Shown here in pieces: positions 6,410 through 61,740 of a DNA stretch of 64,000 nt; position 1 is the first letter of the stretch, and every line of letters starts with the position of its first letter. This DNA comes from Penicillus capitatus (lineage: Eukaryota; Plantae; Chlorophyta), in NCBI GenBank assembly GCA_965649825.1, contig OZ287695.1:846981-910980 (forward strand). Direction: 5' to 3'. A model generated the notes under the pieces. The model did not search any database. It was given only the letters and a program-made list of their open reading frames with translations, and had not been told where the DNA came from. The position numbers and the translations under genes were made by a program.

Positions 6410-7525
6410 TTACACGTTTGATATCTCAACAGTCGAACCTGTTTGCCGAGTCCTGTTTCGGCGTTTCGTTGCACAGTCCAAACGTAAAAACTCAAAGGTA
6501 ACAAAAAACCAGATCGGTAGAACAATGATCAGCGCATCGACGCCTCCCCATATGAGCACCCCGGACAGCCATGGAAGACAGAGCAATACAATAGCAATAC
6601 AAAACCTCCAGACGCGAAAACAATCAAACGCGCCAGGACGACGCAAAGAAGAGACAGAGTCCTCGCACTCGTCGATGTGCAGCATAACACTGAGGCATCG
6701 AACGAAGGGCAGCCAATTGAAGCATCGCGTGTTCGGTTCGTATCGGAAAGCGCAGCCACACAACAACAGAAAGAGGAGACCAAAGCCGCCACCCACAAAC
6801 ACACCGACCTCCAGTCGGCACCACCCACCGAAATGCGCTCGACAGCGAATCACTGTTCTCTCGCGACATTCCCAGTACTTACAGAAACGTTCCCCTCGAT
6901 CGAAGCATTGACAGAAGGACGATTCGATGGCATACCTCGACGAGGCGTTTCCTCTCCACTGGTAGCAATACTGTCCGCCAACATCTTCGGTGAGGCACTG
7001 ATAATCCTCCTCCTCCGAATACCCATCGGAGGTGCGTTCGCTGCATTTCCACTGTGAACAGTACATTCGATTCTCGGCAGGTATCTCGCAGCTGCACGAA
7101 AGTGCATCGTCCTGTTGGCGTTCATAGCACGCCCTGCTGTGGCCTTCCGTTCGACAGTTTGTTCTCTTGCTGATATGCGACGTCAAGCAATTCCATTGTT
7201 GGCAATAGGGCTGTTCGGTTTCGGCGCACAGACATGTGCCATACTCAATCTTCCGTCGGTTCTCTTCTCTGAGTGACCATTGCCCACATCCCGTTTGTGT
7301 GATATTCATGCAGTGATAGACCTCTCGCTCAGTGTAGCTTGCGAGGCGCCACAGGCCTCCTTTCCAAACGCCGTTTTCCGTATAGTAGCCGGCATCTCTC
7401 TTCATGCGGTTCCACGAACGCAGACCCTCTCTGAAATCGCGAGACAGTTCTTCCTCTGACAGTGCTGTCGCTGAGAACGAGACCATTATCGAGACGAAAA
7501 GAAGACAACGGCGTTCTGCTAGCAT
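6410..7525 (-). CDS. Intronless Cys-rich cell-surface protein, paralog 2
   Basis: 371-aa ORF colinear with 4799-5917. Shares KRDAGY, GGLWR, SDGYSExEDY, SSxYxIESSFCQC, AHFGGWC and WLSGVLIWGGxDALIxVLP. Confidence 0.85.
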   Translation of the reverse strand: MLAERRCLLFVSIMVSFSATALSEEELSRDFREGLRSWNRMKRDAGYYTENGVWKGGLWRLASYTEREVYHCMNITQTGCGQWSLREENRRKIEYGTCLCAETEQPYCQQWNCLTSHISKRTNCRTEGHSRACYERQQDDALSCSCEIPAENRMYCSQWKCSERTSDGYSEEEDYQCLTEDVGGQYCYQWRGNASSRYAIESSFCQCFDRGERFCKYWECRERTVIRCRAHFGGWCRLEVGVFVGGGFGLLFLLLCGCAFRYEPNTRCFNWLPFVRCLSVMLHIDECEDSVSSLRRPGAFDCFRVWRFCIAIVLLCLPWLSGVLIWGGVDALIIVLPIWFFVTFEFLRLDCATKRRNRTRQTGSTVEISNV

Positions 7526-34320: not shown

Positions 34321-36488
34321 TCAGCAGCACATGAGCTCTTCGTTTGTTCTTTTTTTGCCCAGGCTGCACATGACGTCTTTCGCGGAGAGTTTCTTGACGT
34401 CCTTGATGGGTCTCGTTTCGTCGATCGCTTCGATTTCGTCCACGCACTTGTTCAGTGGCGGGACCTTGAGGTAGCCTTTCTTATCTTCATCGGCCACACC
34501 AGCAAGACACGGAGCATCTGTGTCGAATCTGCAGATGTAAGTGGCGACACCACTGCACGGGACGGCTCTCAAGTTGGCGATAGCGCCTCTCGTATCGATC
34601 GTGACGCACCTTTCTGTCCCGTCTCTGAAAAAGGGCTCCTGGATCCCCCAGAACTCGGAATCTTCCTTCAGATCGGGCAACGAATCGTCGAGCCAGGCGA
34701 AGTTCGCCGTCGGCGTTTTCTCGGCACCGACCCAGGATCCGTCGATGGAGGCCAGATTTGCCAGAAAGGCGAGCTCGTCTTTGTCTTCGATGCTCACGAG
34801 CTCCCCGTCCATGTCCGCGCAGATGGAGACGGCCTCAGTCTGCTTCACCTCCTCGACCGATCTTAAGTAGTACCTATCTCTGAATGCGTAACACTTGACG
34901 TATCTCTCCTCTGTGTCAGCGTCCACAGGTGCGTCCAGAGCAACGGGATACGGATCTGCGCAGAGGGCTCTCTCGTCATGGGCATTTCTGTAAACCTGCA
35001 ATTCGCAGGGCGTCGTGTCCGCGAGATGGCAGCCCTTCGTGCGACGGATGATCGCACTGATGACCTGATCACTGGTCACTCCATCGAAATCCAGTTCTCG
35101 CAGAATAATGTCGTGTCCCATGACGCCCAGAAACACATCAGGCACATCTCTCGTTCCACGGGCGTAGAATGGCATGGCCACTGTGGTGACGAGTCCTAAT
35201 CCAGCTGCATCTTCGTAGGGCTCGATCCAGAATGGTGATTCTGTCCGACGCTTCGATGCCTCGTACAGGTAGTACGAGTTCAAGGCGTCCAGTGTGTTCG
35301 TGTGTACATCGATGAACGCCCAGGCCCCATCGTTGGCGCAGGCAATCTGTCTCGGAATGCCATCGTCTGCGTGATCCGACAGCGAGTAGGTGAAGATGGT
35401 TGCACGCTTTCCCGTCTTCTTCTTGAGCTTTTCCTGCAGGCGTTCGATGTTGGAGGCCATCTCGGATGGCTTGATGCTCTTCCAATCTTCGGCTGACGTG
35501 TCTCTGCCATCCGTCAGAAACAGTATGATCTTCTCACAGTTGGAGCACGGCGCAGGCTCGTCGTCGCAGCCTTCCCACAGCAAAGGGAAGGCTGCCTCGA
35601 ATGCCGCTGTGAAATTGGTATGTCCCACAGGGACCTCGTTTAGAAGAGCCTCCTTCAGTATCTCCCGATTTTCTTCGTCCCCTTTGATGAGACCGGTTTC
35701 ATTTATGACGGACTCGGCCAAGTCTGAAAAGGTCACCAGAGATATGAAGTCAGCAGAGGTGAATGTGTCGACCATTTCGGAGACAGCCCGGGAAACTAAA
35801 TCCCACTTAGTTTTCATTTGCGAGAAATCTATGAAGTCCAACATAGACCCAGACTTGTCCACCACCAGAACAAGATCCTTCGGTCCAGTACTGGCTCCGA
35901 CATACCATGGGCGGATGCGAGGGTCGAACAGTCTGCATGAATTCCACAGCTCGTCCCCGTTCTCCACATAGCGTGGATCCGCGGTACCTGGATATCGTCG
36001 AATGTGACCATCTCGCGTTCCTGTAAAAATCCATTATCGCCAAAACATGAGGAATCGCACTTACCAATATATATCCACCCAATTTCGTCGCGACCGTATT
36101 CTTTGACAGCGTCTTCGAGGTTCTTGTAGACGCAGATGCTCTCCTTGAGGCTGTCGGTCAGCGTCTTCGGATTCGTGCCCGGAGGCGTGTGGAAAACGGA
36201 ATTATCGTAGTCCACCCGTCGACCGTCGGTTTCGCATATCTCCAGTTCTCCGAGGTGGTGGACGCACTCGGCATCCAAGTAGTTATTAGAACAGGCGTGT
36301 TTGGAACATTTACAGTCGCGGACCAAGAGCGTTCTATTCGAGTGCCACAGTGCCGCGTTCTTGGCGATGTCTATCACAACCTCCTCCTGTCTGTCCAAGA
36401 ACCGTCTGACATCGGCGTTGGAGTCGATTGCCTGTGTAGAGGTTTCGCAAACGAAAATGAAGAGCAGCAAAGCCAAAAGAGCAGTCAT
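34321..36488 (-). CDS. Secreted alpha2delta-like VWA_N-VWA-Cache protein with a C-type lectin-like domain; one intron near 36020-36062
   Basis: Signal peptide; FDPRIRPWYVGASTGPKDLVLVVDKSGSM (VWA MIDAS); ILFLTDG; QIACANDG; FWIEPYEDAAGLGLVTTVAMP (Cache); CYAF...A..IC...GELVSIEDKDELAFL...SWVG...W...EP...RCV...VPCSGVATYIC (CTLD). Confidence 0.87.
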
Positions 36489-38706: not shown

Positions 38707-39600
38707 TCACGGACGCAGGAATCTCTTGAGAGAAGATTTTTTCGATCTAGAACATCTAGAGAAGGCGTTAAGACAGATAACGTCAAACGGCGTTTCTTCA
38801 TCGTCATTGGTTACCGTCTTCGATAATCCAGCACCCACCAGAACCTGAATGGAATGCACCGTTAAGCTTTGATGTGTTACCTCTGACTCGCCTTTGCCGT
38901 TTGTAGCTTCCCGCCATGTGCGGCTTCGTGAAGTGTAGTGTCTCCATCGTAATCAGTCGCATTGATGTCGGCCCCTTCTTTTAGCAACACCTACAAGCAA
39001 CAACGTGGACGAGAGAACGGAGGCAAATTGTCATGTACCTTCACAACTTTGGGGTTACGATTGAAGTTGGCAGCTTCGTGAAGTGGAGTGTCTCCATCGT
39101 TGTCGACGGCATTGATGTCGGCTCCTTCTTTAAGCAACAGCTATAAGCAACACCGTGGACAAGAGAACAGAAGCAAATGGATATATGTACCTTCGCAACT
39201 TTGGGGTTATCATTGAAGTTGGCAGCTTCGTGAAGTGGAGTTCTTCCAAAGGAATCGGTCGCATTGATGTCGGCCCCTTCTTTAAGCAACACCTACAAGA
39301 AACCGCGTGGACAAGAAAACAGAAACAGATCGGCATGGACCTGAACACATTGTGTTCATTGTCCATTCTCTTCCCAAGAGGTGAACAAACAGGCTGACGT
39401 CCAATCGATTCGAGATGGCGACTGTGCTCGCAAGCAGATAACCGACCCACCCCACAGAGCGAGGAACAGACCGAAGACCAGAATGACCAGCGCAGGCCAC
39501 AGCAGTTGTCGCGTCGCTTGATGTGGAGAGATGTCTTCGTCGCGGCAGTGACAGCAGGAGAAGACACGGACACGAATAAATGTGATCCTGCACTTCAATG
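38707..39600 (-). pseudogene. Chimeric remnant: FHA-gene 5' fragment, STRA6-like 3' fragment and the last four ankyrin exons of a third trypsin-ankyrin paralog
   Basis: 39520-39600 resembles 17340-17410; 39345-39490 resembles 48010-48145 (YLLASTVAISNRLDVSLF vs YLLVTTIAILNRLDITLF) with a frameshift; ankyrin exons run from 39292 to TGA 38709-38707. An in-frame stop precedes the first ankyrin splice. Confidence 0.72.
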
Positions 39601-40046: not shown

Positions 40047-42998
40047 TTATGGACGTAGGAGTTTTTTCAAGACGTTTTGTCTCGATTCAGGACATCGAGG
40101 AGACCCTACAACGCAGATAATGTCAAAAGGTGTTTTTCCACCGTTATTGGTTTTCGTCCTTGAGGCCCCGAAAAGCACCAATACCTGAATGGACCATTAA
40201 ACTGTGCATGCTCTCTCTGACTCACCTTTGCTGTCTCTGGCCGACCGTACATCGCTGCATAATGAAGTGGAGTGTTTCCCTTGTTATCAACCGCATTACG
40301 ATAGGCTTCTTCTTCAAGTAACAGCTGAAAGAAGCATAGTGGAAATAAAGACGAAAGTAAATAGCAATGCACCTCTGCGACGTCAGGATTCCATTTAACC
40401 GAAGCAAGGTGAAGAGGCGTCTGTTCGACAGTTGTTTCGTCGTTAACGCCCGCTCCGTGTTCGAGGAGGATCTGGCAGTTGAAAGATTCTGTAAATGCGA
40501 CAACGAAGTGGATGCGCAATAGACCTTGACCATCTCGGTGTTTGAGTAACGCGCTGCTAGATGTAGAGCAGTCCATCCATTGTTGTTGGTCTGTTCGACA
40601 ACCGCTCCGTTCTCGAGGAGGACCTGCAGCCGAGAGATTCTGCCAATGGAGCAACAAAGTAAATGCACCACCGACCTCGACCATCTCGGTGTTTGAGTAA
40701 CGCGCTGCTAGATGTAGAGCAGTCCATCCATTGTCGTTGGTCTGTTCGACGTCCGCTCCGTTCTCGAGGAGGACCTGACAGTCGACAGATTCTGTAAGCG
40801 AATCAGCGAAGTTAATGCGTTACCGACCGCGATCATCTCGGCGTCTGAGTAACGGACTGCCAGATGTAGAGCAGTCCATCCATTGTCCTTGGTCTGTTCG
40901 ACGTCCGCTCCATGTTCGAGGAGGACCTGACAGTCGACAGATTCTGTAAATGTGGCAACAAAGTGAATGCGCAATAGACCTCGACCATCCCGGCGTGTGC
41001 GTAACGCGTTGCAAAGTGCAGAGCGGTCCATTCATTGTCGTTACTCTGTTCGACGTCCGCTCCGTTCTCCAGGAGGACCTGACAGCCGACAGATTCTGCC
41101 AATGGAGCAACAAAGTAAATGCACCACCGACCTCGACCATCTCGGTGTTTGAGTAACGCGTTGCAATGTGCAAAGCAGTCCATCCATCGCCGTCAATGGC
41201 GTTCACATCAGTTCCGTGATCAAGAAGAATCTGAAATGGACGTTAGAGCAGACGATCAAGATAGCTTTGCAGATTTACCTTCGCCACATTCGCGTATCCT
41301 TTTCCCGCTGCCAGATGCAAAGGAGTCTCTTTGTCGCTCTTTAGCTTGTCAACGGTTGCGTTATATTCCAAAAGAACCTACAAGGTATGAGCGCAATGAT
41401 TTAGTAGACACAAAGGAATCATATAGACTCTGTAATCCAGAGTGGACTGGAGGAGAGTGCTACCTCGGTGCTTTCTGATGCATTGTAATACGCTGACCAG
41501 TGCAACAAAGCAAGGCGGTCCCATTTGCTCTTCCATGGCATGTGAACGAATGCCTTGTAGAATGTATCTGGATCCAGTCCCTCCAGAAGCGTGGCTTCCA
41601 ACGTCAGGACATTGTCATTCATTATAGCGTCAATCGCTTCCTGCAAAACAATCCGCCTTTGTAAAATGAGAAACATCATCGATGTTACATTCAGTAGTTG
41701 AGTTTGCGAGAATCCCTTCAGTCGTTTGCGTTCTTCTTCAAGTTCTTGTTTTTCCGACTTCTCCTCGTTCACTCTATCATCCGCAGGCTCATCTGCTTCT
41801 GAAAAACGCACATCGTCTTCGACATCTGGCGTAGGTCTGTTAACAGCTCCTGATGAGTTTGGCACCTGCACTCAGCGATCAAGACAAAAAAAAGCAGATT
41901 TGGAGAACAGTTCATTCACCTCTGGAGCTTCGCCGATTCTCCATAGAATCCAATCCCAGAATGCGCCGATACTTGTGTAGACAGACGGTGATGCATCGGA
42001 GCAATTCCTGGACCCCAAGGATGTCACGCCGACAATAATATCGAATTCTGGATTTCCGGCCGCTATGTTTCCTTCTGGTCTGTTCGAAATCAACAGCGGG
42101 CCGCCAGAATCTCCTAAACCAAGAGAATCTCAGCAGAAATCGAAATCTCGTATCACCGCCCTAAACCTTCACATGTGTTTTCAGGCGAAAAACCGGCACA
42201 AATCGAGTGACTTTTGACTGAGTCTCCCAGAAGTTTCTTGCAGATGTGGTGTTCCACATGTACTAGGTTGTTCGTCAACTGTAAAGTATTTGGGTAATTT
42301 CCAGTCTTGTTCAGTCCCCAACCGAGTGCGGTGAACATCTTGCCGGTAGGAAATTCGCCTTCTTGCTTATCAATCGACGGCAGTGTGAGATTCGCCTCCT
42401 TGTTCAGTTTGACGACGGCGATGTCGTACCCGTCGTGCACGTCGCCAGACCAAGATTCAGGCCAGTAGCTTTGCTCTCCGCTAAATACCTACAAACATTC
42501 ATCTCGACAGGAAAGCGAACAAACATAAACCGGGTAAGTAGTACTTTGTCAGGGTCGTTTGCGTCGAGCTCGTAAATACCACAGCGGACAAGCGGATGTC
42601 TACCGAGACTGCCCGAAGAGGCTGGGTCGACGCAATGCGCTGCAGTGACCACCCATTGTGGTCGAATGAGAAATCCACCGCAGCGATGGACCTCTTCTTC
42701 TCGTGTCGCAAGACTGCAAAGGTACGGGAACCGTCCCTCAGGTGCCTCTTTCCCCTTCATCGTACAAAAGTGTTACGATACCGTCAGAGAATCGTGAGAC
42801 TTCACAATAATCTGTGGAACAAGTTTCACTGTAGAGTCTGGCTTTCCCGACTTCTCTAAACAATCACCCGTGTCGGAGTGCTAACCGACAATAGTCTCTA
42901 CTATGGACTTGAGGACTGGCGTCGGCACAGACGAGCAGCACAGATGCCAATAGAAGCATAACTGCAATGACTCTTGTCGACAACGAAGAAAGCAACAT
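40047..42998 (-). CDS. Secreted trypsin-family (S1) serine protease fused to about 9 ankyrin repeats, copy 2
   Basis: Signal peptide MLLSSLSTRVIAVMLLLASVLLVCADASP, TAAHC, DGYDIAVVKL, GDSGGP; 10 phase-0 ankyrin-region exons spliced in frame to TAA at 40049-40047. Confidence 0.88.
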
Positions 42999-43128
42999 GT
43001 TTCGAAAAGCGAAAGGACAATGGCTACAGAACACCAACAGCCGTTTAAATAGACCCAGCGCCGTCCATTCATCATAAAGCGTTGAGTAACCGCCACGATG
43101 ACTGCTGGACACCACACGACGAGACTAA

Positions 43129-43267
43129 TGTAAGTTGACAGTCGATGGCGCGGGAAAACAAGACGAAGAGTCGGGAGAACTAATCTCTAAAAGACTGTTT
43201 GACTTCCTCCTTTTATAATGACACATGATTCATTTGATTGTGTCAGTTGTAGTCATTCATTTCCACA
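43129..43267 (-). repeat. 3' LTR (139 bp)
   Basis: Identical to 47637-47775; preceded by the short purine-rich AGGGAAGCG; contains minus-strand TATAAAA at about 43211-43217 and the pol stop codon. Confidence 0.97.
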
Positions 43268-46009
43268 CGCTTCCCTGTGCTGAACTTCCCGGAGTGAATC
43301 CACATGTACGATCAAACTACGAGAGCCGCATTGGAGTTCCCTGAGGTGATTCGATATCACTCTGTTCACCGGATAAGGCCCCTTCCAGAAGGGTGCAAAC
43401 TTTTCGTCTAAGCGGCCCATTCGAACATGATCTCTAAGCCAGACACTCTCGCCAGCTTGGAAGAGTAAACGAGAAGGAGAAGATCGACCCTCGGAGGTCT
43501 TCTGCTGCCGAGCGCAAGTTTTCTGCCTCGCTCGAGAGCGCGCTTGCCTGACCTCTGAGATTACCTCGGTCTCCAGACGACCCATTGCCCAGAGCACCGC
43601 TGGCGGTGATCCCGTGACATCATTGGCAGTTTCATTAATCACATCTGTCGCTTTCTTCAGGAGTTTCATCCAGGTAGGTCTTCGGGCTCCTTCATGCATC
43701 ATTCGACGTAATCGCCCGATCAAATTCTGATTACATCGTTCGATCTGTCCATTCGAGTGATGAGCGTGACCAGGTGCCAGTACGCCTCTGATGCCTGCGT
43801 TACGGAGCCACGATTGAAACTTCTCGGACGTGAAATATGAAGCTGAGTCAGTCAGCAGAACCTTGGGCACTCCGACTTCATCGAATAGACGTTGTAAGTG
43901 ACGTTGAGCCGTCTTGGTATCCGCACGTTTCGACGCTGACGTCCACAGAAACCTTGAGAGATGATCGGTCACCGCCAAGATATACTGCACTCCTCCTTCA
44001 GCAGGTTTGAGGGGACCAATAAAGTCGGCACTCCAAACATCTTTGACATCCATGACTTCTTCAACTACTCCTAGAGGAATCACAGGCTTCGCCGCCTTAA
44101 AGCGTTGACACGCTGTACAGCTTTCGACATAAGCCTTGACCGCTTTCCACGTCGCTCCTCCTCCAAGTGCCTTCAATCGTTGCATCGTCTTGCGTGCACA
44201 GAAGTGGCCATCATGCGCTCTTTTCAACAGGCGATAAGGATCTTCTTGCATGGTTCTCAAGTGTGGCATTCGTGACAGAAAGTCTGGGATTACATTGCTT
44301 CGACCATCGACGAATCGAATGTCAGGACAAAACTCCAGAAGTTTCACAAGACGTCTGTACACAAATGGACTGCAATTGTCTGGATTATCCAAGCTGAACG
44401 TGGAACTGTTGTCGGTGTAGACAGTGACGTCCTGTCCGTAGATGTACGGCTTAAATCGCTGCAACGCTTGTAGCAGCGCTTCAGCTTCAAGTTCGTTCGA
44501 ACGGTGCTTCTGCATCTGCGAATTCCACAGGCCGGACGTGCACACTATGATGGCTTGATCTTGCTGCAGGCACGCGCCCCATCCAGTGCTCGATGCATCC
44601 ACACTGACCGAGTACTCTTTCGTTGATGATGGTAGAGTAATCCTGACGGTGTGTTGTTCGAGTAATTTCAAGAACTCTGTCCAGTCTTCCGACTTGCCGG
44701 ATTCTTCACACCTCTTCAATGCTTGCGAAACAGTAGCCCCTTTCCATACGAATCTGCAAATTTCATTCCACCAACCCTTCACCTTGCGCCACTCTTTTAT
44801 TCCTTGAGGGGGCTTCATGTCTTTCCATTGGGTGAGTACCGCTGATTCTGGGGTCCACCCTTCAGTTGACAATTCCATGCCCAGATACTGGAAGCTTGTT
44901 CTTCCAAATTTACTCTTCTTGGGATTGAGTTTCCAGCCGTCTTTGACCAGTGCCTTCAAGAGCAGTTGAAGGTCCTTTTCATGCTGTTCATCGGAACAAC
45001 TCAGCACCAAGATGTCATCTGCGTACACTATTAGTTGCGATTGTATTTTAACATTACGCAAAGTCTTATCGAGCGCCCGCTGGAATTCGAATGGAGAATT
45101 CGAATAACCAAACGGCAGTCGATTAAAAACGTACTGTTTGTTTCGGTGAGAGAAGCCGAAAAACTGTCTGATCTGTTGGCCCAACACTATCTGGTTGTAA
45201 GCCCTGGAAATGTCCAAGCTTGAACCAACAGAAAACGGTTGAATGCTTGCCACGACATTAGTTCTCGAAGTTTTCGAGTAAGGCTCTTTTCTCACGAAAC
45301 TGTTGAGTCTTCGCAAATCAGCCACAATTCGATCGCCGCCTTCCTTTTTAGGAACGCCGAAAATAGGCATGAGTAGAGGTTCTTGGGCTGCTTCGCTGAC
45401 AATACCATCTTTTATCAACTGATCCAGATCTTTCTGCAGAGCTTGCTCTTGAGCCGGTCCTCTTGGAGGTGGTTTCGGTTGCTGGCGTGGGTCAAGCGGA
45501 CATTTGAGGGGAATATGGTTGACAACATAATGTTGACATTTACCTAACGTTTCCTCAAATAGCTCTGGGAACTCTTCTTTCCATCTTTCTCCGTCGAGTG
45601 CTGCGCTTCGACACATCGACACCTTCTCTCGGTCTTCAATGATTCGGATGCCTTGGTCAGGAATCATTATGCTTGTAGATGTAGTCATCACGTTGCATAG
45701 ATCACTCTTCGGTGTAAGCGCAACAGCCGTTTTCGAGTGATTTGTTATCACACCCCAGATGCGCTTCCCATCAGTCTTCGCATGAAACTCTATGTAACTT
45801 GGTCGGGTAGCGTCTTCGATCTGTTTAATGTCACTAAATTGGATCTGGATGTTGATGGCTCTCTTTTCTTGTGGCCCCAACATCCAATTCCTATTAAAGG
45901 GAATCACTAATCGATTGTTTCGTTTGAATGGCATGTATTTGAGAGGCTCCAGCAATCGCACTAGGCCTGGCTGTTTGCCGGATTCACAGCCAGACCACAT
46001 CCGTTTTTT
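43253..46009 (-). CDS. pol: Pol (degenerate dUTPase-like segment, RT, RNase H, integrase), probably expressed by -1 frameshift
   Basis: RT PIFGVPKKEG-GDRIVADLRRLN, LDISRAYNQI, LPFG, YADD; RNase H VDASSTGWGACL, ELEAEAL, YTDN; integrase H-x3-H...C-x2-C, WSADFIGPL, TDSASYF, SNGQIER, KGPYP. Confidence 0.95.
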   Translation of the reverse strand, partial: KKRMWSGCESGKQPGLVRLLEPLKYMPFKRNNRLVIPFNRNWMLGPQEKRAINIQIQFSDIKQIEDATRPSYIEFHAKTDGKRIWGVITNHSKTAVALTPKSDLCNVMTTSTSIMIPDQGIRIIEDREKVSMCRSAALDGERWKEEFPELFEETLGKCQHYVVNHIPLKCPLDPRQQPKPPPRGPAQEQALQKDLDQLIKDGIVSEAAQEPLLMPIFGVPKKEGGDRIVADLRRLNSFVRKEPYSKTSRTNVVASIQPFSVGSSLDISRAYNQIVLGQQIRQFFGFSHRNKQYVFNRLPFGYSNSPFEFQRALDKTLRNVKIQSQLIVYADDILVLSCSDEQHEKDLQLLLKALVKDGWKLNPKKSKFGRTSFQYLGMELSTEGWTPESAVLTQWKDMKPPQGIKEWRKVKGWWNEICRFVWKGATVSQALKRCEESGKSEDWTEFLKLLEQHTVRITLPSSTKEYSVSVDASSTGWGACLQQDQAIIVCTSGLWNSQMQKHRSNELEAEALLQALQRFKPYIYGQDVTVYTDNSSTFSLDNPDNCSPFVYRRLVKLLEFCPDIRFVDGRSNVIPDFLSRMPHLRTMQEDPYRLLKRAHDGHFCARKTMQRLKALGGGATWKAVKAYVESCTACQRFKAAKPVIPLGVVEEVMDVKDVWSADFIGPLKPAEGGVQYILAVTDHLSRFLWTSASKRADTKTAQRHLQRLFDEVGVPKVLLTDSASYFTSEKFQSWLRNAGIRGVLAPGHAHHSNGQIERCNQNLIGRLRRMMHEGARRPTWMKLLKKATDVINETANDVTGSPPAVLWAMGRLETEVISEVRQARSRARQKTCARQQKTSEGRSSPSRLLFQAGESVWLRDHVRMGRLDEKFAPFWKGPYPVNRVISNHLRELQCGSRSLIVHVDSLREVQHREACGNE
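45948..46009 (-). promoter_or_regulatory. -1 programmed ribosomal frameshift signal (A_AAA_AAC plus predicted H-type pseudoknot)
   Basis: Minus strand reads c-aa aaa aac, 6-nt spacer ggatgt, then ggtctggctgt-gaa-tccggcaa-acagccaggcc-tagtgcga-ttgctgga. The pol frame is closed by TGA just upstream of the slip site. Confidence 0.85.
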
Positions 46010-47637
46010 TGCTCAGGTTCGTATGCCTTGAAGCATTGTACTTCTGGTTCGCCGACTTTGATCAGCTTCTTGGAGCTACAATCAACGAGGTAGCCGTTTG
46101 TTTCGAGGAATTTATACCCTATTATCGCTTCTTGGCCTTTTCCCTTAAAACAGTAAGCGCTGAAATTAACCGGGCGACCATCCAGCTTCGCGGGCACATC
46201 TAGATATCCCGTGATCTTCTCTCGCTCCCCGTTGGCCAAGACCACATGCCTGTCTGAAGGGAGCATGCTTGAGGCCAGTCCGAGGGCTTTCACGGTTTCC
46301 TCTTGTAGGAAATTATCCGTGGCTCCAGTATCAATGAGAGCACGGATTGACTTTCCTGCCATCTCAAGGTTAGCATGCATAGATGCTTTCTTAGGTTGGA
46401 CACTTCTGCACACAAGCGGCGATTCAGTTCTACTTATGCTTTCAACTTCGCAAAGATGAGCTCTGTCAAGAGCTTCTTCTTCATCCATATTGGCATGGCG
46501 CGCTTCTTTGGCTTTCGAAGAATGCGTTCGACGTCGGTCAGCCTCAGCTCTGATTGCGCGTTGGCTCTCTTCAAAATAGCGATCTTCAGAGAGTAATTCT
46601 TTGAACGCAATCATGATCTGATTCTTCGTCTTCAGTGTCAGAGGGAATTGTAGCTTGCCATCCCTCACGATAACGTCCCTCACAGCGCGACATGTTTCGT
46701 CTTCGTCTACGGCTGCATTACACATCGTTTGCATCGATCCGAGATCCATGTAGTCACCAAGTTTCATCGAAGGTCGGACCTCTCCAGATCTTAATCGAAT
46801 GTAATCCATCACCACACAGACTCTGTCGTAGATGAACTGGAGAGTGAGCTGATTGATGGCCACAGTCGACAGATGATACACAAAGTCGACAGGAAGTTTC
46901 TGGACTAAAAGATGAGTCACATTTTCTTCTGATAGGAGTTTCTCATCAATATACGTTTTCCCGGCTCTTCCGAATCGAACAACGAATTCGAGGAGCGTCT
47001 CTGTAGGTTTCTTCTCTAAAGCCTTCAGTTGAGCGAGGGGCTCAAGAGCGCTCTCTTGTGGAACCAATTTCTTCAACTCACACTTGATGGCACCCCATCT
47101 CAGCAGTTCATCAGTCTGAGTTCGGAAGAATGCCTCGTCTTTTTCAGCATAGTACCCCGTTTTGACTTGTTCTGACGGTAATCTCTTCACGCAGTGAACA
47201 GCCTCGAGAAGGGACTCTCCCAGAGGATTGGCGTAGTCAATCCACGACAGAAACAACCGCAGACGTTCATTGCCCGCATTTGTGCAGGACTCCAAATGAT
47301 TGACGACTCTTCTATACGTTTTTCGGTCCCATGGGTGAAGAGGTACTGGCGGCGCTTCGAGTCCTGAGCCTCCGACGCAGTCTCGAGCGATCAGTACCGT
47401 CGCGTTGACCAAAATCGAATCCCGCATTCGCACACCGTATCTCCCTTGCGCCGTCAAGAGAGCGACGCGTCCGCGCTCAAGACGGAAAAAATCACACGCA
47501 GCGTCACGCAGCTGCGCGTAACTCATCGACGCGTCAACTTCAATTTCGACTGTACGTCCGTTCCATGACACCTGACATGAGACCGCCGTACTTCTCGTCA
47601 TCTCCAAGGATTCGTTGTCCGTGCGCTCCGAAACCAT
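45961..47637 (-). CDS. gag: Gag-protease polyprotein with an N-terminal ubiquitin/SUMO-like domain
   Basis: 558-aa ORF: beta-grasp-like N-terminus ending IARDCVGG, helical Gag-like core (TETLLEFVVRF...LLVQKLP), aspartic protease ALIDTGATDNFL...IIGYKFL. No CCHC knuckle seen. Confidence 0.88.
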   Translation of the reverse strand: MVSERTDNESLEMTRSTAVSCQVSWNGRTVEIEVDASMSYAQLRDAACDFFRLERGRVALLTAQGRYGVRMRDSILVNATVLIARDCVGGSGLEAPPVPLHPWDRKTYRRVVNHLESCTNAGNERLRLFLSWIDYANPLGESLLEAVHCVKRLPSEQVKTGYYAEKDEAFFRTQTDELLRWGAIKCELKKLVPQESALEPLAQLKALEKKPTETLLEFVVRFGRAGKTYIDEKLLSEENVTHLLVQKLPVDFVYHLSTVAINQLTLQFIYDRVCVVMDYIRLRSGEVRPSMKLGDYMDLGSMQTMCNAAVDEDETCRAVRDVIVRDGKLQFPLTLKTKNQIMIAFKELLSEDRYFEESQRAIRAEADRRRTHSSKAKEARHANMDEEEALDRAHLCEVESISRTESPLVCRSVQPKKASMHANLEMAGKSIRALIDTGATDNFLQEETVKALGLASSMLPSDRHVVLANGEREKITGYLDVPAKLDGRPVNFSAYCFKGKGQEAIIGYKFLETNGYLVDCSSKKLIKVGEPEVQCFKAYEPEQKNGCGLAVNPANSQA

Positions 47638-47775
47638 GTAAGTTGACAGTCGATGGCGCGGGAAAACAAGACGAAGAGTCGGGAGAACTAATCTCTAAAA
47701 GACTGTTTGACTTCCTCCTTTTATAATGACACATGATTCATTTGATTGTGTCAGTTGTAGTCATTCATTTCCACA
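47637..47775 (-). repeat. 5' LTR (139 bp)
   Basis: Identical by eye to 43129-43267; TG/CA termini; followed immediately on the minus strand by the PBS-like TGGTTTCGGAGCGC. Confidence 0.97.
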
Positions 47776-47905
47776 CTAACCACCACAGACAGACAGTGTT
47801 TTGACGTGTTTTCAGCTAACCTCTGCCTCGGTGAACTGGCAAGGCGATGAGGGGATAAATTGCAGAGATTCGAGCAACGACTTATGTTCTGCAACGTTTG
47901 GTTGT

Positions 47906-53104: not shown

Positions 53105-56100
53105 CTGCCTCGACTGGCAGCCAGACCGGTCGATAGGATGCCCTGGCTGCCTCCACTGGCAGCCAGAGCAGTAAGTTGGCCTCCAGTGACGGCCAGAGCG
53201 GTCGGTAGGGTGCCCTGGCTGCCTCCAGTGGCAGCCAAAGCGGTGGGCTGGTCGCCCATTGCTGCCTCCACTGGCAGCCAAAGCGGTCGATAGGGTGCCC
53301 TGGCTGCCTCCACTGGCAGCCAGAGCAGTAAGTTGGCCTTCAGTGACGGCCAGAGCGGTCAGTAGGGTTCTCTGGCTGCCTCCACTGGCAGCCAAAGCGG
53401 TGGGCTGGTCGCCCAATGCTGCCTCCACTGGCAGCGAGAGATCGGTTAGGCTGCCCTGGCTGCCTCCACTGGCAGCCAGAGCAGTAAGTTGGCCTCCAGT
53501 GACGGCCAGAGCGGTCGGTAGGGTGCCCTGGCTGCCTCCAGTGGCAGCCAAAGCGGTGGGCTGGTCGCCCATTGCTGCCTCCACTGGCAGCCAAAGCGGT
53601 GGGCTGGTCGCCCATTGCTGCCTCCACTGGCAGCCAAAGCGGTCGATAGGGTGCCCTGGCTGCCTCCACTGGCAGCCAGAGCAGTAAGTTGGCCTTCAGT
53701 GACGGCCAGAGCGGTCAGTAGGGTTCTCTGGCTGCCTCCACTGGCAGCCAAAGCGGTTTGCTGGTCGCCCATTGCTGCCTCGAGTGACAGCGAGAGATCG
53801 GGTAGGGTGCCCTGGCTGCCTCCACTGGCAGCCAGAGCAGTAAGTTGGCCTCCAGTGACGGCCAGAGCGGTCGGTAGGGTGTCCTGGCTGCCTCCACTGG
53901 CAACCAAAGCGGTGGGCTGGTCGCCCAATGCTGTCTCCACTGGCAGCGAGAGATCGGTTAGGCTGCCCTGGCTGCCTCCACTGGCAGCCAGAGCAGTAAG
54001 TTGGCCTCCAGTGACGGCCAGAGCGGTCGGTAGGGTGTCCTGGCTGCCTCCACTGGCAGCCAAAGCGGTGGGCTGGTCGCCCAATGCTGCCTCCACTGGC
54101 AGCGAGAGATCGGTTAGGCTGCCCTGGCTGCCTCCACTGGCAGCCAGAGCAGTAAGTTGGCCTCCAGTGACGGCCAGAGCGGTCGGTAGGGTGCCCTGGC
54201 TGCCTCCAGTGGCAGCCAAAGCGGTGGGCTGGTCGCCCATTGCTGCCTCCACTGGCAGCCAAAGCGGTGGGCTGGTCGCCCATTGCTGCCTCCACTGGCA
54301 GCCAAAGCGGTCGATAGGGTGCCCTGGCTGCCTCCACTGGCAGCCAGAGCAGTAAGTTGGCCTTCAGTGACGGCCAGAGCGGTCAGTAGGGTTCTCTGGC
54401 TGCCTCCACTGGCAGCCAAAGCGGTTTGCTGGTCGCCCATTGCTGCCTCGAGTGACAGCGAGAGATCGGGTAGGGCGCCCTGGCTGCCTCCACTGGCAGC
54501 CAGAGCAGTAAGTTGGCCTTCAGTGACGGCCAGAGCGGTCAGTAGGGTTCTCTGGCTGCCTCCACTGGCAGCCAAAGCGGTGGGCTGGTCGCCCAATGCT
54601 GCCTCCACTGGCAGCGAGAGATCGGTTAGGCTGCCCTGGCTGCCTCCACTGGCAGCCAGAGCAGTAAGTTGGCCTCCAGTGACGGCCAGAGCGGTCGGTA
54701 GGGTGCCCTGGCTGCCTCCAGTGGCAGCCAAAGCGGTGGGCTGGTCGCCCATTGCTGCCTCCACTGGCAGCCAAAGCGGTGGGCTGGTCGCCCATTGCTG
54801 CCTCCACTGGCAGCCAAAGCGGTCGATAGGGTGCCCTGGCTGCCTCCACTGGCAGCCAGAGCAGTAAGTTGGCCTTCAGTGACGGCCAGAGCGGTCAGTA
54901 GGGTTCTCTGGCTGCCTCCACTGGCAGCCAAAGCGGTTTGCTGGTCGCCCATTGCTGCCTCGAGTGACAGCGAGAGATCGGGTAGGGTGCCCTGGCTGCC
55001 TCCACTGGCAGCCAGAGCAGTAAGTTGGCCTCCAGTGACGGCCAGAGCGGTCGGTAGGGTGTCCTGGCTGCCTCCACTGGCAACCAAAGCGGTGGGCTGG
55101 TCGCCCAATGCTGTCTCCACTGGCAGCGAGAGATCGGTTAGGCTGCCCTGGCTGCCTCCACTGGCAGCCAGAGCAGTAAGTTGGCCTCCAGTGACGGCCA
55201 GAGCGGTCGGTAGGGTGCCCTGGCTGCCTCCAGTGGCAGCCAAAGCGGTGGGCTGGTCGCCCATTGCTGCCTCCACTGGCAGCCAAAGCGGTCTATAGGG
55301 TGCCCTGGCTGCCTCCACTGGCAGCCAGAGCAGTAAGTTGGCCTTCAGTGACGGCCAGAGCGGTCAGTAGGGTTCTCTGGCTGCCTCCACTGGCAGCCAA
55401 AGCGGTTTGCTGGTCGCCCATTGCTGCCTCGAGTGACAGCGAGAGATCGGGTAGGGTGCCCTGGCTGCCTCCACTGGCAGCCAGAGCAGTAAGTTGGCCT
55501 CCAGTGACGGCCAGAGCGGTCAGTAGGGTTCTCTGGCTGCCTCCACTGGCAGCCAAAGCGGTGGGCTGGTCGCCCAATGCTGCCTCCACTGGCAGCGAGA
55601 GATCGGTTAGGCTGCCCTGGCTGCCTCCACTGGCAGCCAGAGCAGTAAGTTGGCCTCCAGTGACGGCCAGAGCGGTCGGTAGGGTGCCCTGGCTGCCTCC
55701 AGTGGCAGCCAAAGCGGTGGGCTGGTCGCCCATTGCTGCCTCCACTGGCAGCCAAAGCGGTGGGCTGGTCGCCCATTGCTGCCTCCACTGGCAGCCAAAG
55801 CGGTCGATAGGGTGCCCTGGCTGCCTCCACTGGCAGCCAGAGCAGTAAGTTGGCCTTCAGTGACGGCCAGAGCGGTCAGTAGGGTTCTCTGGCTGCCTCC
55901 ACTGGCAGCCAAAGCGGTTTGCTGGTCGCCCATTGCTGCCTCGAGTGACAGCGAGAGATCGGGTAGGGTGCCCTGGCTGCCTCCACTGGCAGCCAGAGCA
56001 GTAAGTTGGCCTCCAGTGACGGCCAGAGCGGTCGGTAGGGTGTCCTGGCTGCCTCCACTGGCAACCAAAGCGGTGGGCTGGTCGCCCAATGCTGTCTCCA

Positions 56101-59100
56101 CTGGCAGCGAGAGATCGGTTAGGCTGCCCTGGCTGCCTCCACTGGCAGCCAGAGCAGTAAGTTGGCCTCCAGTGACGGCCAGAGCGGTCGGTAGGGTGTC
56201 CTGGCTGCCTCCACTGGCAACCAAAGCGGTGGGCTGGTCGCCCAATGCTGCCTCCACTGGCAGCCAGAGCAGTAAGTTGGCCTCCAGTGATGGCCAGAGC
56301 GGTCGGTAGGGTGCCCTGGCTGCCTCCACTGGCAGCCAAAGCGGTGGGCTGGTCGCCCATTGCTGCCTCCACTGGCAACCAAAGCGGTGGGCTGGTCGCC
56401 CATTGCTGCCTCCACTGGCAGCGAGAGATCGGTTAGGCTGCCCTGGCTGCCTCCACTGGCAGCCAGAGCAGTAAGTTGGCCTCCAGTGACGGCCAGAGCG
56501 GTCGGTAGGGTGTCCTGGCTGCCTCCAGTGGCAGCCAAAGCGGTGGGCTGGTCGCCCATTGCTGCCTCCACTGGCAGCCAAAGCGGTGGGCTGGTCGCCC
56601 ATTGCTGCCTCCACTGGCAGCCAAAGCGGTCGATAGGGTGCCCTGGCTGCCTCCACTGGCAGCCAGAGCAGTAAGTTGGCCTTCAGTGACGGCCAGAGCG
56701 GTCAGTAGGGTTCTCTGGCTGCCTCCACTGGCAGCCAAAGCGGTGGGCTGGTCGCCCATTGCTGCCTCGAGTGACAGCGAGAGATCGGGTAGGGTGCCCT
56801 GGCTGCCTCCACTGGCAGCCAGAGCAGTAAGTTGGCCTCCAGTGACGGCCAGAGCGGTCGGTAGGGTGCCCTGGCTGCCTCCAGTGGCAGCCAAAGCGGT
56901 GGGCTGGTCGCCCATTGCTGCCTCCACTGGCAGCCAAAGCGGTGGGCTGGTCGCCCATTGCTGCCTCCACTGGCAGCCAAAGCGGTCGATAGGGTGCCCT
57001 GGCTGCCTCCACTGGCAGCCAGAGCAGTAAGTTGGCCTTCAGTGACGGCCAGAGCGGTCAGTAGGGTTCTCTGGCTGCCTCCACTGGCAGCCAAAGCGGT
57101 GGGCTGGTCGCCCAATGCTGCCTCCACTGGCAGCGAGAGATCGGTTAGGCTGCCCTGGCTGCCTCCACTGGCAGCCAGAGCAGTAAGTTGGCCTCCAGTG
57201 ACGGCCAGAGCGGTCGGTAGGGTGCCCTGGCTGCCTCCAGTGGCAGCCAAAGCGGTGGGCTGGTCGCCCATTGCTGCCTCCACTGGCAGCCAAAGCGGTG
57301 GGCTGGTCGCCCATTGCTGCCTCCACTGGCAGCCAAAGCGGTCGATAGGGTGCCCTGGCTGCCTCCACTGGCAGCCAGAGCAGTAAGTTGGCCTTCAGTG
57401 ACGGCCAGAGCGGTCAGTAGGGTTCTCTGGCTGCCTCCACTGGCAGCCAAAGCGGTGGGCTGGTCGCCCATTGCTGCCTCGAGTGACAGCGAGAGATCGG
57501 GTAGGGTGCCCTGGCTGCCTCCACTGGCAGCCAGAGCAGTAAGTTGGCCTCCAGTGACGGCCAGAGCGGTCGGTAGGGTGTCCTGGCTGCCTCCAGTGGC
57601 AACCAAAGCGGTGGGCTGGTCGCCCATTGCTGCCTCCACTGGCAGCCAAAGCGGTGGGCTGGTCGCCCATTGCTGCCTCCACTGGCAGCCAAAGCGGTCG
57701 ATAGGGTGCCCTGGCTGCCTCCACTGGCAGCCAGAGCAGTAAGTTGGCCTTCAGTGACGGCCAGAGCGGTCAGTAGGGTTCTCTGGCTGCCTCCACTGGC
57801 AGCCAAAGCGGTGGGCTGGTCGCCCATTGCTGCCTCCACTGGCAGCGAGAGATCGGTTAGGCTGCCCTGGCTGCCTCCACTGGCAGCCAGAGCAGTAAGT
57901 TGGCCTCCAGTGACGGCCAGAGCGGTCGGTAGGGTGTCCTGGCTGCCTCCACTGGCAGCCAAAGCGGTGGGCTGGTCGCCCATGGCTGCCTCCACTGGCA
58001 ACGAGAGATCGGGTAGGGTGCCCTGGCTGCCTCCACTGGCAGCCAGAGCAGTAAGTTGGCCTTCAGTGACGGCCAGAGCGGTCGGTAGGGTGTCCTGGCT
58101 GCCTCCACTGGCAGCCAAAGCGGTCGATAGGGTGCCCTGGCTGCCTCCACTGGCAGCCAGAGCAGTAAGTTGGCCTTCAGTGACGGCCAGAGCGGTCAGT
58201 AGGGTTCTCTGGCTGCCTCCACTGGCAGCCAAAGCGGTGGGCTGGTCGCCCATTGCTGCCTCGAGTGACAGCGAGAGATCGGGTAGGGTGCCCTGGCTGC
58301 CTCCACTGGCAGCCAGAGCAGTAAGTTGGCCTCCAGTGACGGCCAGAGCGGTCGGTAGGGTGCCCTGGCTGCCTCCAGTGGCAACCAAAGCGGTGGGCTG
58401 GTCGCCCATTGCTGCCTCCACTGGCAGCCAAAGCGGTGGGCTGGTCGCCCATTGCTGCCTCCACTGGCAGCCAAAGCGGTGGGCTGGTCGCCCAATGCTG
58501 TCTCCACTGGCAGCGAGAGATCGGTTAGGCTGCCCTGGCTGCCTCCACTGGCAGCCAGAGCAGTAAGTTGGCCTCCAGTGACGGCCAGAGCGGTCGGTAG
58601 GGTGTCCTGGCTGCCTCCAGTGGCAACCAAAGCGGTGGGCTGGTCGCCCATTGCTGCCTCCACTGGCAGCCAAAGCGGTGGGCTGGTCGCCCATTGCTGC
58701 CTCCACTGGCAGCCAAAGCGGTCGATAGGGTGCCCTGGCTGCCTCCACTGGCAACCAAAGCGGTGGGCTGGTCGCCCAATGCTGTCTCCACTGGCAGCGA
58801 GAGATCGGTTAGGCTGCCCTGGCTGCCTCCACTGGCAGCCAGAGCAGTAAGTTGGCCTCCAGTGACGGCCAGAGCGGTCGGTAGGGTGTCCTGGCTGCCT
58901 CCACTGGCAACCAAAGCGGTGGGCTGGTCGCCCAATGCTGTCTCCACTGGCAGCGAGAGATCGGTTAGGCTGCCCTGGCTGCCTCCACTGGCAGCCAGAG
59001 CAGTAAGTTGGCCTCCAGTGACGGCCAGAGCGGTCGGTAGGGTGTCCTGGCTGCCTCCACTGGCAGCCAAAGCGGTGGGCTGGTCGCCCAATGCTGCCTC

Positions 59101-61740
59101 CACTGGCAGCGAGAGATCGGTTAGGCTGCCCTGGCTGCCTCCACTGGCAGCCAGAGCAGTAAGTTGGCCTCCAGTGACGGCCAGAGCGATCGGTAGGGTG
59201 CCCTGGCTGCCTCCAGTGGCAGCCAAAGCGGTGGGCTGGTCGCCCATTGCTGCCTCCACTGGCAGCCAAAGCGGTGGGCTGGTCGCCCATTGCTGCCTCC
59301 ACTGGCAGCCAAAGCGGTCGATAGGGTGCCCTGGCTGCCTCCACTGGCAGCCAGAGCAGTAAGTTGGCCTTCAGTGACGGCCAGAGCGGTCAGTAGGGTT
59401 CTCTGGCTGCCTCCACTGGCAGCCAAAGCGGTGGGCTGGTCGCCCATTGCTGCCTCCACTGGCAGCGAGAGATCGGTTAGGCTGCCCTGGCTGCCTCCAC
59501 TGGCAGCCAGAGCAGTAAGTTGGCCTCCAGTGACGGCCAGAGCGGTCGGTAGGGTGTCCTGGCTGCCTCCACTGGCAGCCAAAGCGGTGGGCTGGTCGCC
59601 CATGGCTGCCTCCACTGGCAACGAGAGATCGGGTAGGGTGCCCTGGCTGCCTCCACTGGCAGCCAGAGCAGTAAGTTGGCCTTCAGTGACGGCCAGAGCG
59701 GTCAGTAGGGTTCTCTGGCTGCCTCCACTGGCAGCCAAAGCGGTGGGCTGGTCGCCCATTGCTGCCTCCACTGGCAGCCAAAGCGGTGGGCTGGTCGCCC
59801 ATTGCTGCCTCCACTGGCAGCGAGAGATCGGTTAGGCTGCCCTGGCTGCCTCCACTGGCAGCCAGAGCAGTAAGTTGGCCTCCAGTGACGGCCAGAGCGG
59901 TCGGTAGGGTGTCCTGGCTGCCTCCAGTGGCAACCAAAGCGGTGGGCTGGTCGCCCATTGCTGCCTCCACTGGCAGCCAAAGCGGTGGGCTGGTCGCCCA
60001 TTGCTGCCTCCACTGGCAGCCAAAGCGGTCGATAGGGTGCCCTGGCTGCCTCCACTGGCAGCCAGAGCAGTAAGTTGGCCTTCAGTGACGGCCAGAGCGG
60101 TCAGTAGGGTTCTCTGGCTGCCTCCACTGGCAGCCAAAGCGGTTTGCTGGTCGCCCATTGCTGCCTCGAGTGACAGCGAGAGATCGGGTAGGGTGCCCTG
60201 GCTGCCTCCACTGGCAGCCAGAGCAGTAAGTTGGCCTCCAGTGACGGCCAGAGCGGTCGGTAGGGTGTCCTGGCTGCCTCCACTGGCAACCAAAGCGGTG
60301 GGCTGGTCGCCCAATGCTGTCTCCACTGGCAGCGAGAGATCGGTTAGGCTGCCCTGGCTGCCTCCACTGGCAGCCAGAGCAGTAAGTTGGCCTCCAGTGA
60401 CGGCCAGAGCGGTCGGTAGGGTGTCCTGGCTGCCTCCACTGGCAACCAAAGCGGTGGGCTGGTCGCCCAATGCTGCCTCCACTGGCAGCCAGAGCAGTAA
60501 GTTGGCCTCCAGTGACGGCCAGAGCGGTCGGTAGGGTGCCCTGGCTGCCTCCACTGGCAGCCAAAGCGGTGGGCTGGTCGCCCATTGCTGCCTCCACTGG
60601 CAGCCAGAGCAGTAAGTTGGCCTCCAGTGATGGCCAGAGCGGTCGGTAGGGTGCCCTGGCTGCCTCCACTGGCAGCCAAAGCGGTGGGCTGGTCGCCCAT
60701 TGCTGCCTCCACTGGCAGCCAAAGCGGTGGGCTGGTCGCCCATTGCTGCCTCCACTGGCAGCCAAAGCGGTCGATAGGGTGCCCTGGCTGCCTCCACTGG
60801 CAGCCAGAGCAGTAAGTTGGCCTTCAGTGACGGCCAGAGCGGTCAGTAGGGTGCCCTGGCTGCCTCCACTGGCAGCCAAAGCGGTGGGCTGGTCGCCCAA
60901 TGCTGCCTCCACTGGCAGCGAGAGATCGGTTAGGCTGCCCTGGCTGCCTCCACTGGCAGCCAGAGCAGTAAGTTGGCCTCCAGTGACGGCCAGAGCGGTC
61001 GGTAGGGTGTCCTGGCTGCCTCCACTGGCAACCAAAGCGGTGGGCTGGTCGCCCAATGCTGCCTCCACTGGCAGCCAGAGCAGTAAGTTGGCCTCCAGTG
61101 ATGGCCAGAGCGGTCGGTAGGGTGCCCTGGCTGCCTCCACTGGCAGCCAAAGCGGTGGGCTGGTCGCCCATTGCTGCCTCCACTGGCAGCCAAAGCGGTG
61201 GGCTGGTCGCCCATTGCTGCCTCCACTGGCAGCGAGAGATCGGTTAGGCTGCCCTGGCTGCCTCCACTGGCAGCCAGAGCAGTAAGTTGGCCTCCAGTGA
61301 CGGCCAGAGCGGTCGGTAGGGTGTCCTGGCTGCCTCCACTGGCAGCCAAAGCGGTGGGCTGGTCGCCCATGGCTGCCTCCACTGGCAACGAGAGATCGGG
61401 TAGGGTGCCCTGGCTGCCTCCACTGGCAGCCAAAGCGGTGGGCTGGTCGCCCAATGCTGCCTCCACTGGCAACCAAAGCGGTGGGCTGGTCGCCCAATGC
61501 TGCCTCGAGTGACAGCGAGAGATCGGGTAGGGTGCCCTGGCTGCCTCCACTGGCAGCCAGAGCAGTATAGTGGCCTCCAGTGACGGCCAGAGCGGTCGGT
61601 AGAGTGCCCTGGCTGCCTCCACTGGCAGCCAAAGCGGTGGGCTGGTCGCCCAATGCTGCCTCCACTGGCAGCCAAAGAAGTAAGTTGGCCTCCAGTGACG
61701 GCCAGATCGGTCGGTAGGGTGCCCATGGCTGCCTCCTCCA
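53105..61740. repeat. 8.6-kb GC-rich modular minisatellite with a palindromic core and higher-order repeats
   Basis: Core TGGCTGCC-TCCACT-GGCAGCCA (8-bp inverted repeat) joined to four recurrent modules of 72, 43, 42 and 41 bp. A 356-bp higher-order period is visible (e.g. 56602, 56958, 57314). Confidence 0.97.

Follow-up and report, generated by a model that had tools for sequence, protein, structure and literature searches.

A diverged ubiquitin-like domain ending in Gly-Gly at the N-terminus of Gag in a Ty3/gypsy retrotransposon of Penicillus capitatus, a candidate signal for processing by host proteases

In the fusion proteins UBA52, RPS27A and FAU, the mature N-terminus of the cargo is made by a host isopeptidase. 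Cytopathic pestiviruses such as bovine viral diarrhea virus (BVDV) use captured host ubiquitin, SUMO or NEDD8 as a processing signal for host proteases. Among retrotransposons, 2A-like peptides were described at the N-termini of open reading frames (ORFs) of elements without long terminal repeats (non-LTR elements; L1Tc, Ingi, CR1 and others; PMC3708506). For LTR elements, the sole 2A case that we found in the literature concerns the C-terminus of a reverse transcriptase (RT) of the Ty3 type (PMC13405545), and we found no published 2A-like peptide at the N-terminus of an LTR-element Gag. Burro, a giant planarian gypsy element, contains an internal Ubi2/SUMO-like motif (PF11976; PMC6431247). 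Here we analyze the Gag protein of a Ty3/gypsy retrotransposon in a 64,000-nucleotide stretch of the Penicillus capitatus genome (assembly GCA_965649825.1, contig OZ287695.1, positions 846,981 to 910,980; hereafter the window), the N-terminal domain of which is predicted to be a ubiquitin-like domain (Ubl) ending in Gly-Gly. The initial annotation of the window had postulated such a domain and knew of no described Ty3/gypsy lineage with this architecture. Our literature search returned neither a Ty3/gypsy nor any other LTR element with an N-terminal Ubl-Gly-Gly on Gag, and the claim of novelty can thus be upheld for the N-terminal position, but has to be limited in view of the internal SUMO-like motif of Burro.

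The 78-aa string in which the domain was originally recognized corresponds exactly to residues 13-90 of a 558-aa ORF and is followed by SGLEAPPVP. Its end at G90 was retained in our analysis, whereas the domain proper comprises aa 19-90 and the conserved start is M1 and not M13. The ORF encodes Gag and a protease (PR) matching PF13975, and the next ORF encodes RT, RNase H and integrase. For structure prediction, the domain was modelled by AlphaFold2 (AF2) with an alignment of 6 sequences. The predicted local distance difference test score (pLDDT), given as means of 10-residue blocks, was 86-95 over Gag aa 24-83, approximately 80 over aa 14-23 and below 50 from aa 88 on. Aa 19-84 were modelled as β1-β2-α1-β3-(β4)-β5, with β1 at aa 19-25, β2 at 28-34, α1 at 40-51, β3 at 58-62 and β5 at 79-84, followed by the flexible tail RDCVGG. 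A second AF2 run with Gag aa 1-405 and 28 sequences yielded identical elements, a disordered linker at aa 82-96 and an all-α core from about aa 105, with pLDDT values below 50 at aa 64-80, between β3 and β5.

When the domain model was compared with the PDB by Foldseek, the top 50 matches were without exception ubiquitin-like proteins (E about 1e-4), headed by preSUMO-3/SENP2, UFM1, SUMO-2, the archaeal ubiquitin of Caldiarchaeum, ubiquitin and ISG15. Target-normalised template modelling (TM) scores were 0.70-0.77 for single-domain modifier chains, with root mean square deviations (rmsd) of 1.6-2.5 Å over about 75 residues; the UFM1 matches had the smallest rmsd (1.6-1.7 Å) and the largest query TM score (0.68). 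In the viral library BFVD, the best match was a BVDV polyprotein fragment, followed by giant-virus ubiquitins; the matched BVDV fragments plausibly represent the host ubiquitin or Ubl inserts of cytopathic strains. β5 ends at aa 84, four residues short of the Gly-Gly. The last strand together with RDCVGG gives a gap-free alignment with residues 65-76 of ubiquitin (1UBQ topology), and the Gly-Gly therefore occupies the canonical ubiquitin position. An assignment to PB1-, RA- or RBD-type domains was dropped as primary reading because none of these was among the top 50 structural matches. With high confidence, the models predict that the N-terminal domain of this Gag is a β-grasp of the modifier type, the fold that the initial annotation had expected.

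To which Ubl family the domain is related was more difficult to judge; identity to any known Ubl is 10-20%. With the family profile as query against PDB sequences, the five best matches were SUMO proteins or SUMO tags (E=0.026-0.07) with plant SUMO in first place (0.026), and UFM1, ubiquitin and NEDD8 were not among the matches. The alignment between profile and SUMO spans β1-α1-β3 and includes the SUMO-typical helix-1 motif (A/V)C-x-R-Q-x-(V/I). A family hidden Markov model (HMM) built on the five intact domains was additionally scored against reference Ubls and 1000 shuffles of each. It gave 18.8 bits for Arabidopsis SUMO1, 8.0 for human SUMO2, 7.7 for human SUMO1 and 5.6 for UFM1, scores that no shuffle reached (0/1000), as well as 2.7 bits for ubiquitin and 1.6 for NEDD8, which were reached by 4/1000 and 10/1000 shuffles, respectively. 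In hhalign comparisons, P-values were 5.6e-4 for SUMO, 1e-3 for UFM1 and 0.013 for ubiquitin/NEDD8, and the terminal Gly of the reference fell on the Gly-Gly of the family in all three cases. Among the five weak Pfam matches obtained for all six family members, four were β-grasp families (TUG-UBL1, RA_2, RBD and ubiquitin). SUMO and UFM1 are the best fold matches of the domain, but UFM1 has one conserved Gly where the family has two, and the SUMO tail QTGG is absent. The domain matches the Pfam model of neither family and differs from both in its tail, although the terminus of UFM1, RDRVG↓SC (checked in PDB 8ohd), contains the same RDRVG as the subfamily L001/P0002. The Ubl family cannot be assigned from sequence alone; the domain is most likely a diverged modifier-type Ubl of SUMO ancestry that can be placed in neither SUMO, UFM1 nor ubiquitin. 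Of the ubiquitin/SUMO likeness proposed at the outset, the modifier-type fold was supported, but SUMO and UFM1 come closer to the domain than ubiquitin does.

A phmmer search with Gag aa 1-405 against 1.84 billion representatives (E≤1e-3) returned only 29 Gag-homologous proteins, among which the Ubl region was never matched outside a Gag context. The relatives display three N-terminal architectures: Ubl-bearing, domain-less or equipped with a 2A-like motif. Besides the window family, intact Ubl-bearing lineages are L001/P0002 (61% domain identity to the window family), P0010 from the same assembly as the window (28%), P0012 from another ENA sample (24%) and P0011 from a JGI metagenome (23%). 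Their tails read RDCVGG, RDRVGG, RDKCGG, KDKCGG and RDKSGG, and just six columns are invariant, namely C48, R70, D86, G89, G90 and W103. Conservation of the Gly-Gly in spite of drifting flanks, which the initial annotation had anticipated, was thereby observed at 23-61% domain identity. The linker sequence is not conserved, and the distance from Gly-Gly to the invariant Trp varies between 8 and 12 residues. The residue after Gly-Gly is Ser (Ser91 in the window copy), Thr, Ser or His in four lineages and Pro in P0011. Such variability is expected if specificity resides in the Ubl body, as at cleavage sites of deubiquitinases (DUBs) and ULP proteases. When proteins were searched by word index, with either the Ubl alignment or P0011 and P0012 as query, no new lineages came up, a negative of little weight since some of the query proteins themselves were missed. 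A search of the JGI metagenomes with the alignment A5 returned the contig of P0011 alone.

In at least ten domain-less lineages, Gag starts at an MVSE encoded by the primer binding site (PBS) or at another Met, 4-17 aa before a conserved Trp or Tyr. An MVSE start was found in P0008, P0012, P0015, P0019, P0020, P0023, P0025 and P0028, and starts of the MVSE type in at least nine distant relatives; the PBS equivalent in L009 is ATGGTTTCGAAGCG. The first 11 nt of the PBS are conserved in distant relatives, and apparently MVSE is conserved because the PBS is conserved. Three lineages carry a 2A-like motif instead, namely LLLRGNIESNPGP in P0016 (L009), LLKTGAESNPGP in P0030 (L010) and, after upstream extension of the ORF, MTKSRRLIEMLLLMAGVEPNPGP / LLLMAGVEPNPGP in P0021 (L008). 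Their NPG↓P is located 7-14 residues before the conserved Trp. The linker of the window Gag is as long as the N-terminal arm of the domain-less and 2A-bearing relatives. Since these cousins have either the Gag N-terminus or a putative co-translational separation site at this place, Gly-Gly lies at a module boundary, and the comparison supports a release site at its position. The P0010 element and a domain-less relative (MVSELRTSK...) lie head-to-head within 1 kb (L006 4802-5095, minus strand, and 6001-6825, plus strand), showing that both architectures coexist in one host. Two further N-terminal extensions were noticed: aa 1-76 of P0016 form a leader in which a hydrophobic stretch resembling a signal peptide precedes the 2A-like motif, and aa 1-85 of P0033 form an acidic, disordered-looking extension with neither Gly-Gly nor 2A motif.

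The domain is under purifying selection and the Gly-Gly is selectively maintained. When the Ubl region of the window copy is compared with that of L001, the ratio of nonsynonymous to synonymous substitution rates (dN/dS) is 0.25 at a dS of about 1.2. In comparison with L005, a fragmented and decayed copy whose frame is interrupted by a stop shortly downstream of the domain, it is 0.88. L005 is also the only copy in which the Gly-Gly was lost (GGA GGC to GAA GAC, encoding Glu-Asp), whereas it was retained in the five intact lineages. There, the two Gly codons are GGA, GGC, GGG and GGT in differing combinations, indicating that the constraint acts on the protein and not on the RNA; conservation of the codons at the RNA level was ruled out for this reason. 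As every base between the LTRs of the element is coding, an extra domain of 80 aa is unlikely to be idle.

These observations can be combined to a model in which a host Ubl-specific protease cuts Gag at Gly-Gly, and we give this full chain of events an even chance of being correct. The domain would descend from a host Ubl, most likely of the SUMO type, that was captured long ago, and its Gly-Gly would be read by a host protease of the ULP/SENP, DUB or UfSP type. Cleavage would yield a Ubl of approximately 90 residues with an exposed C-terminal Gly, and a Gag in which the linker forms an N-terminal arm of the length found in domain-less relatives. In this way, Ubl-Gly-Gly could be the post-translational counterpart of the 2A-like skipping peptides at the equivalent position in sister lineages. 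The released Ubl could serve as folding or expression aid, as decoy or as conjugatable modifier. A more far-reaching version, a protist Ty3/gypsy clade with interchangeable Gag release cassettes (2A-like or Ubl-Gly-Gly) in which the released SUMO-like protein is itself active, must be regarded as quite unlikely at present. Such an active Ubl could be conjugated by the SUMO/UFM1 machinery or act as a decoy for it, and might for example blunt SUMO-dependent transposon silencing.

Several findings weigh against processing at Gly-Gly or against the identification of the domain on which it depends. Cleavage is something that we infer. The fold model is built on an alignment of 6 sequences, and intact Ubl lineages number just five, from three samples. 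Pfam matches of the Gag domain to ubiquitin (E=0.33) and TUG-UBL1 (E=0.06) were below the cut-off, Pfam gave no match to Rad60-SLD (PF11976) at E≤10 and none to Ufm1, and phmmer with the domain against PDB sequences returned no match. Small alignments of SUMO, ubiquitin and UFM1 were matched by hhalign with probabilities of 1.5-12%. The tail RDCVGG is neither LRGG nor QTGG and does not exactly fit a known protease specificity. The canonical Asp deviates in all three 2A-like motifs, the skipping activity of which is putative. Finally, intact P0011 has Gly-Gly-Pro, a sequence that is a poor substrate, or none, for Ulp1-type proteases and most DUBs. In this lineage, either the Ubl stays attached or the cut falls after the first Gly in the style of UFM1 (RDxxG↓G).

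The Pro in P0011 would also be compatible with the main alternative, a UBL that remains part of the protein (type II, like those of DDI1, RAD23 and ubiquilin). It would dock Gag or Gag-PR to a host factor, for example a Ras-like GTPase, the proteasome or a receptor for ubiquitin or SUMO, and Gly-Gly would be a conserved hinge. The fold evidence fits this explanation equally well, the weak Pfam matches include the non-cleaved TUG-UBL1, RA_2 and RBD, and the order of UBL, helical region and retropepsin is formally DDI1-like. However, integral UBLs generally have no C-terminal di-Gly at the ubiquitin position, whereas Gly-Gly accounts for two of the six invariant columns in this family and falls where relatives have their 2A-like sites or where their Gag naturally begins. 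As the top 50 structural matches are mostly free modifiers as well, we consider a permanently attached UBL rather unlikely. Removal of the Ubl could alternatively be accomplished within the linker by the aspartic protease of the element itself, which is encoded in the same ORF and would find the linker disordered and accessible. The linker sequence varies between lineages, however, and the invariant Gly-Gly would be incidental and left unexplained, given that retropepsins favor hydrophobic P1/P1' residues, which makes this route improbable.

Among the variants of cleavage by a host protease, derivation of the domain from UFM1 with a UfSP-type cut after the first Gly would accommodate the Gly-Gly-Pro lineage. 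It agrees with the tail shared by UFM1 and P0002, with the best Foldseek rmsd and query TM score and with an HMM score above those of all UFM1 shuffles. On the other hand, SUMO was ahead of UFM1 in both profile tests, a Pfam Ufm1 match was not obtained, and the hhalign P-value of 1e-3 came with a probability of 8.6% only, so that we attribute a small likelihood to a UFM1 origin. Standard sequence searches without significance would finally be expected for a chance resemblance, in which an unstructured or unrelated N-terminal extension happens to contain a fortuitous Gly-Gly. This explanation is hardly tenable in view of the confident and reproduced fold prediction, the uniform structural matches, the purifying selection on the domain and the retention of Gly-Gly in deeply diverged lineages in which its codons have changed synonymously.

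Around the domain, Gag and the retrotransposon are organized as listed in Table 1.

Table 1. Positions of the element, of the parts of its Gag and of neighboring host ORFs in the window (TSD, target site duplication)
Feature	Position	Strand	Details
5' LTR	47637..47775	(-)	139 nt, TGTGG...TTACA; 100% identical direct repeat
3' LTR	43129..43267	(-)	139 nt, identical to 5' LTR
TSD TTAG (4 bp)	upstream copy 47776..47779; downstream copy 43125-43128	(-)	
PBS TGGTTTCGGAGCGCACGG	47619..47636	(-)	abuts 5' LTR
Gag-PR ORF	45961..47637	(-)	558 aa
Disordered N-terminal leader	47584..47637	(-)	aa 1-18; pLDDT <50 for aa 1-15 in whole-Gag AF2 run
Predicted Ubl β-grasp domain	47368..47583	(-)	aa 19-90; AF2, Foldseek against PDB and BFVD, dN/dS
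Gly89-Gly90 (GGA GGC), proposed processing site	47368..47373	(-)	kept in five intact lineages
Disordered Pro-rich linker SGLEAPPVPLHP	47332..47367	(-)	aa 91-102; pLDDT <50 in both AF2 runs
All-α Gag core from invariant W103	46483..47331	(-)	aa 103 to about 385; AF2
Retropepsin domain, DTG	46102..46371	(-)	aa 423-512; Pfam PF13975 gag-asp_proteas, 1.8e-11
Slippery heptamer A_AAA_AAC	46003..46009	(-)	within 40-nt overlap of gag-PR and pol
Pol ORF	43253..46000	(-)	915 aa; RT, RNase H, integrase zinc domain, integrase core (Pfam)
Long, apparently intron-poor host ORFs: AAA ATPase with DUF7751, F-box/LRR, TLC-type ATP/ADP transporter, WD40, VWA + C-type lectin	261-1388, 21786-23258, 25327-26424, 29722-31281, 34321-35967		

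The Gag core is modelled with helices at aa 105-383 and pLDDT values above 90 over aa 141-280. A Pfam scan of the element ORFs gave no match to a Gag family, and Foldseek with the whole-Gag model returned ELMO and FERM proteins, which combine a Ubl with helical parts, and ubiquitins, but no capsid. A CCHC knuckle is present in P0020, a remote Gag relative. The element has a total length of 4.65 kb and the features of Ty3/gypsy retrotransposons, namely identical TG..CA LTRs, a TSD, a PBS starting from TGG and the order PR-RT-RNase H-integrase. The LTRs were reported as 141 nt by the repeat program, which corresponds to the 139 nt plus one base on either side that matches by chance. The start codon of Gag spans the boundary between LTR and PBS, with A47637 as the final base of the 5' LTR and TG as the start of the PBS. 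The PBS opens with TGGTTTCGGAG and is translated as (M)VSER. At the other end of the element, the Pol stop codon is located 15 nt within the 3' LTR (43253-43267). By frame arithmetic, pol is in the -1 frame relative to gag-PR, and A_AAA_AAC is a canonical heptamer for -1 frameshifting. No second copy of the element was found within the window. Elsewhere in the same ENA assembly, several contigs contain near-identical copies with a full-length 558-aa Gag-PR, and the family is therefore young and probably active.

The neighboring genes show that the window is eukaryotic; no rRNA or tRNA was found when it was scanned. Repeats are prominent in the surroundings of the element. An 8.5-kb satellite-like tandem array at 53179-61677 has a base period of approximately 42 nt, with higher-order periods at 156 and 356 nt. 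Several frames of either strand are open and give rise to pseudo-ORFs rich in Ala, Gly, Ser and Leu. A 151-152-nt repeat forms three short arrays (82% matches) at 18271-19000, 38923-39342 and 40446-41187, of which the first and third resemble each other in their consensus unit and one is located approximately 2 kb from the 3' end of the element.

If Gag is indeed cut at Gly-Gly, an LTR retroelement would delegate a step of Gag maturation to the Ubl-protease system of its host. So far, this principle is known from ribosomal-protein fusions and sporadic pestivirus recombinants, whereas here it would be a fixed and ancient feature. Cleavage would also generate a free Ubl with exposed Gly in a 1:1 ratio with the capsid protein, by which transposons might tap or disturb SUMO/UFM1 signaling. 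In several eukaryotes, the silencing of transposons depends centrally on SUMO. Provided that the released protein is active, it would constitute the first transposon-encoded ubiquitin-like modifier. Independent of its fate, the occurrence of Ubl-Gly-Gly and 2A-like peptides at one site offers a comparative system for the question why a separable N-terminal Gag product is needed, and the layout of Ubl, helical region and retropepsin is of interest for the origin of DDI1.

In DDI1 and DDI2, a UBL, a helical domain and a retropepsin follow each other in the order seen in the Gag-PR ORF, but the UBL of DDI1 is uncleaved and lacks Gly-Gly. The protease of the element scored 44.9 bits with retrotransposon families and 15.6 bits with the DDI1-type family PF09668 (cut-off 26). 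Burro resembles the element in having a SUMO-like domain in a Ty3/gypsy polyprotein. The motif of Burro is, however, internal to an ORF of approximately 4,900 aa, where it is found among many captured domains, and it is recognizable by Pfam, with neither a terminal Gly-Gly nor processing having been proposed, whereas the Ubl described here is N-terminal on the Gag of a 4.65-kb element. The 2A-like peptides of non-LTR retrotransposons likewise detach an N-terminal product, but do so co-translationally and protease-free, unlike the mechanism considered for Ubl-Gly-Gly. With cytopathic BVDV, the element would share the use of a captured host Ubl as processing signal in a mobile or viral polyprotein, in line with the BVDV fragments as best structural match in the viral library. 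The inserts of BVDV are recent, near-identical copies of host sequences and occur sporadically, whereas the Ubl of the element has diverged over a long time and is a fixed component of several retrotransposon lineages. UBA52, RPS27A and FAU (FUBI-eS30) likewise have an N-terminal Ubl-Gly-Gly head-to-tail with a cargo. In the element, the Ubl has a retrotransposon capsid protein as cargo, is highly diverged, follows an 18-aa leader and ends in a non-canonical tail, and processing is inferred. That Ubl fusions are cut by host isopeptidases is thus a known principle, and what would be new is its fixed use in a retrotransposon lineage and its apparent interchangeability with 2A-like peptides.

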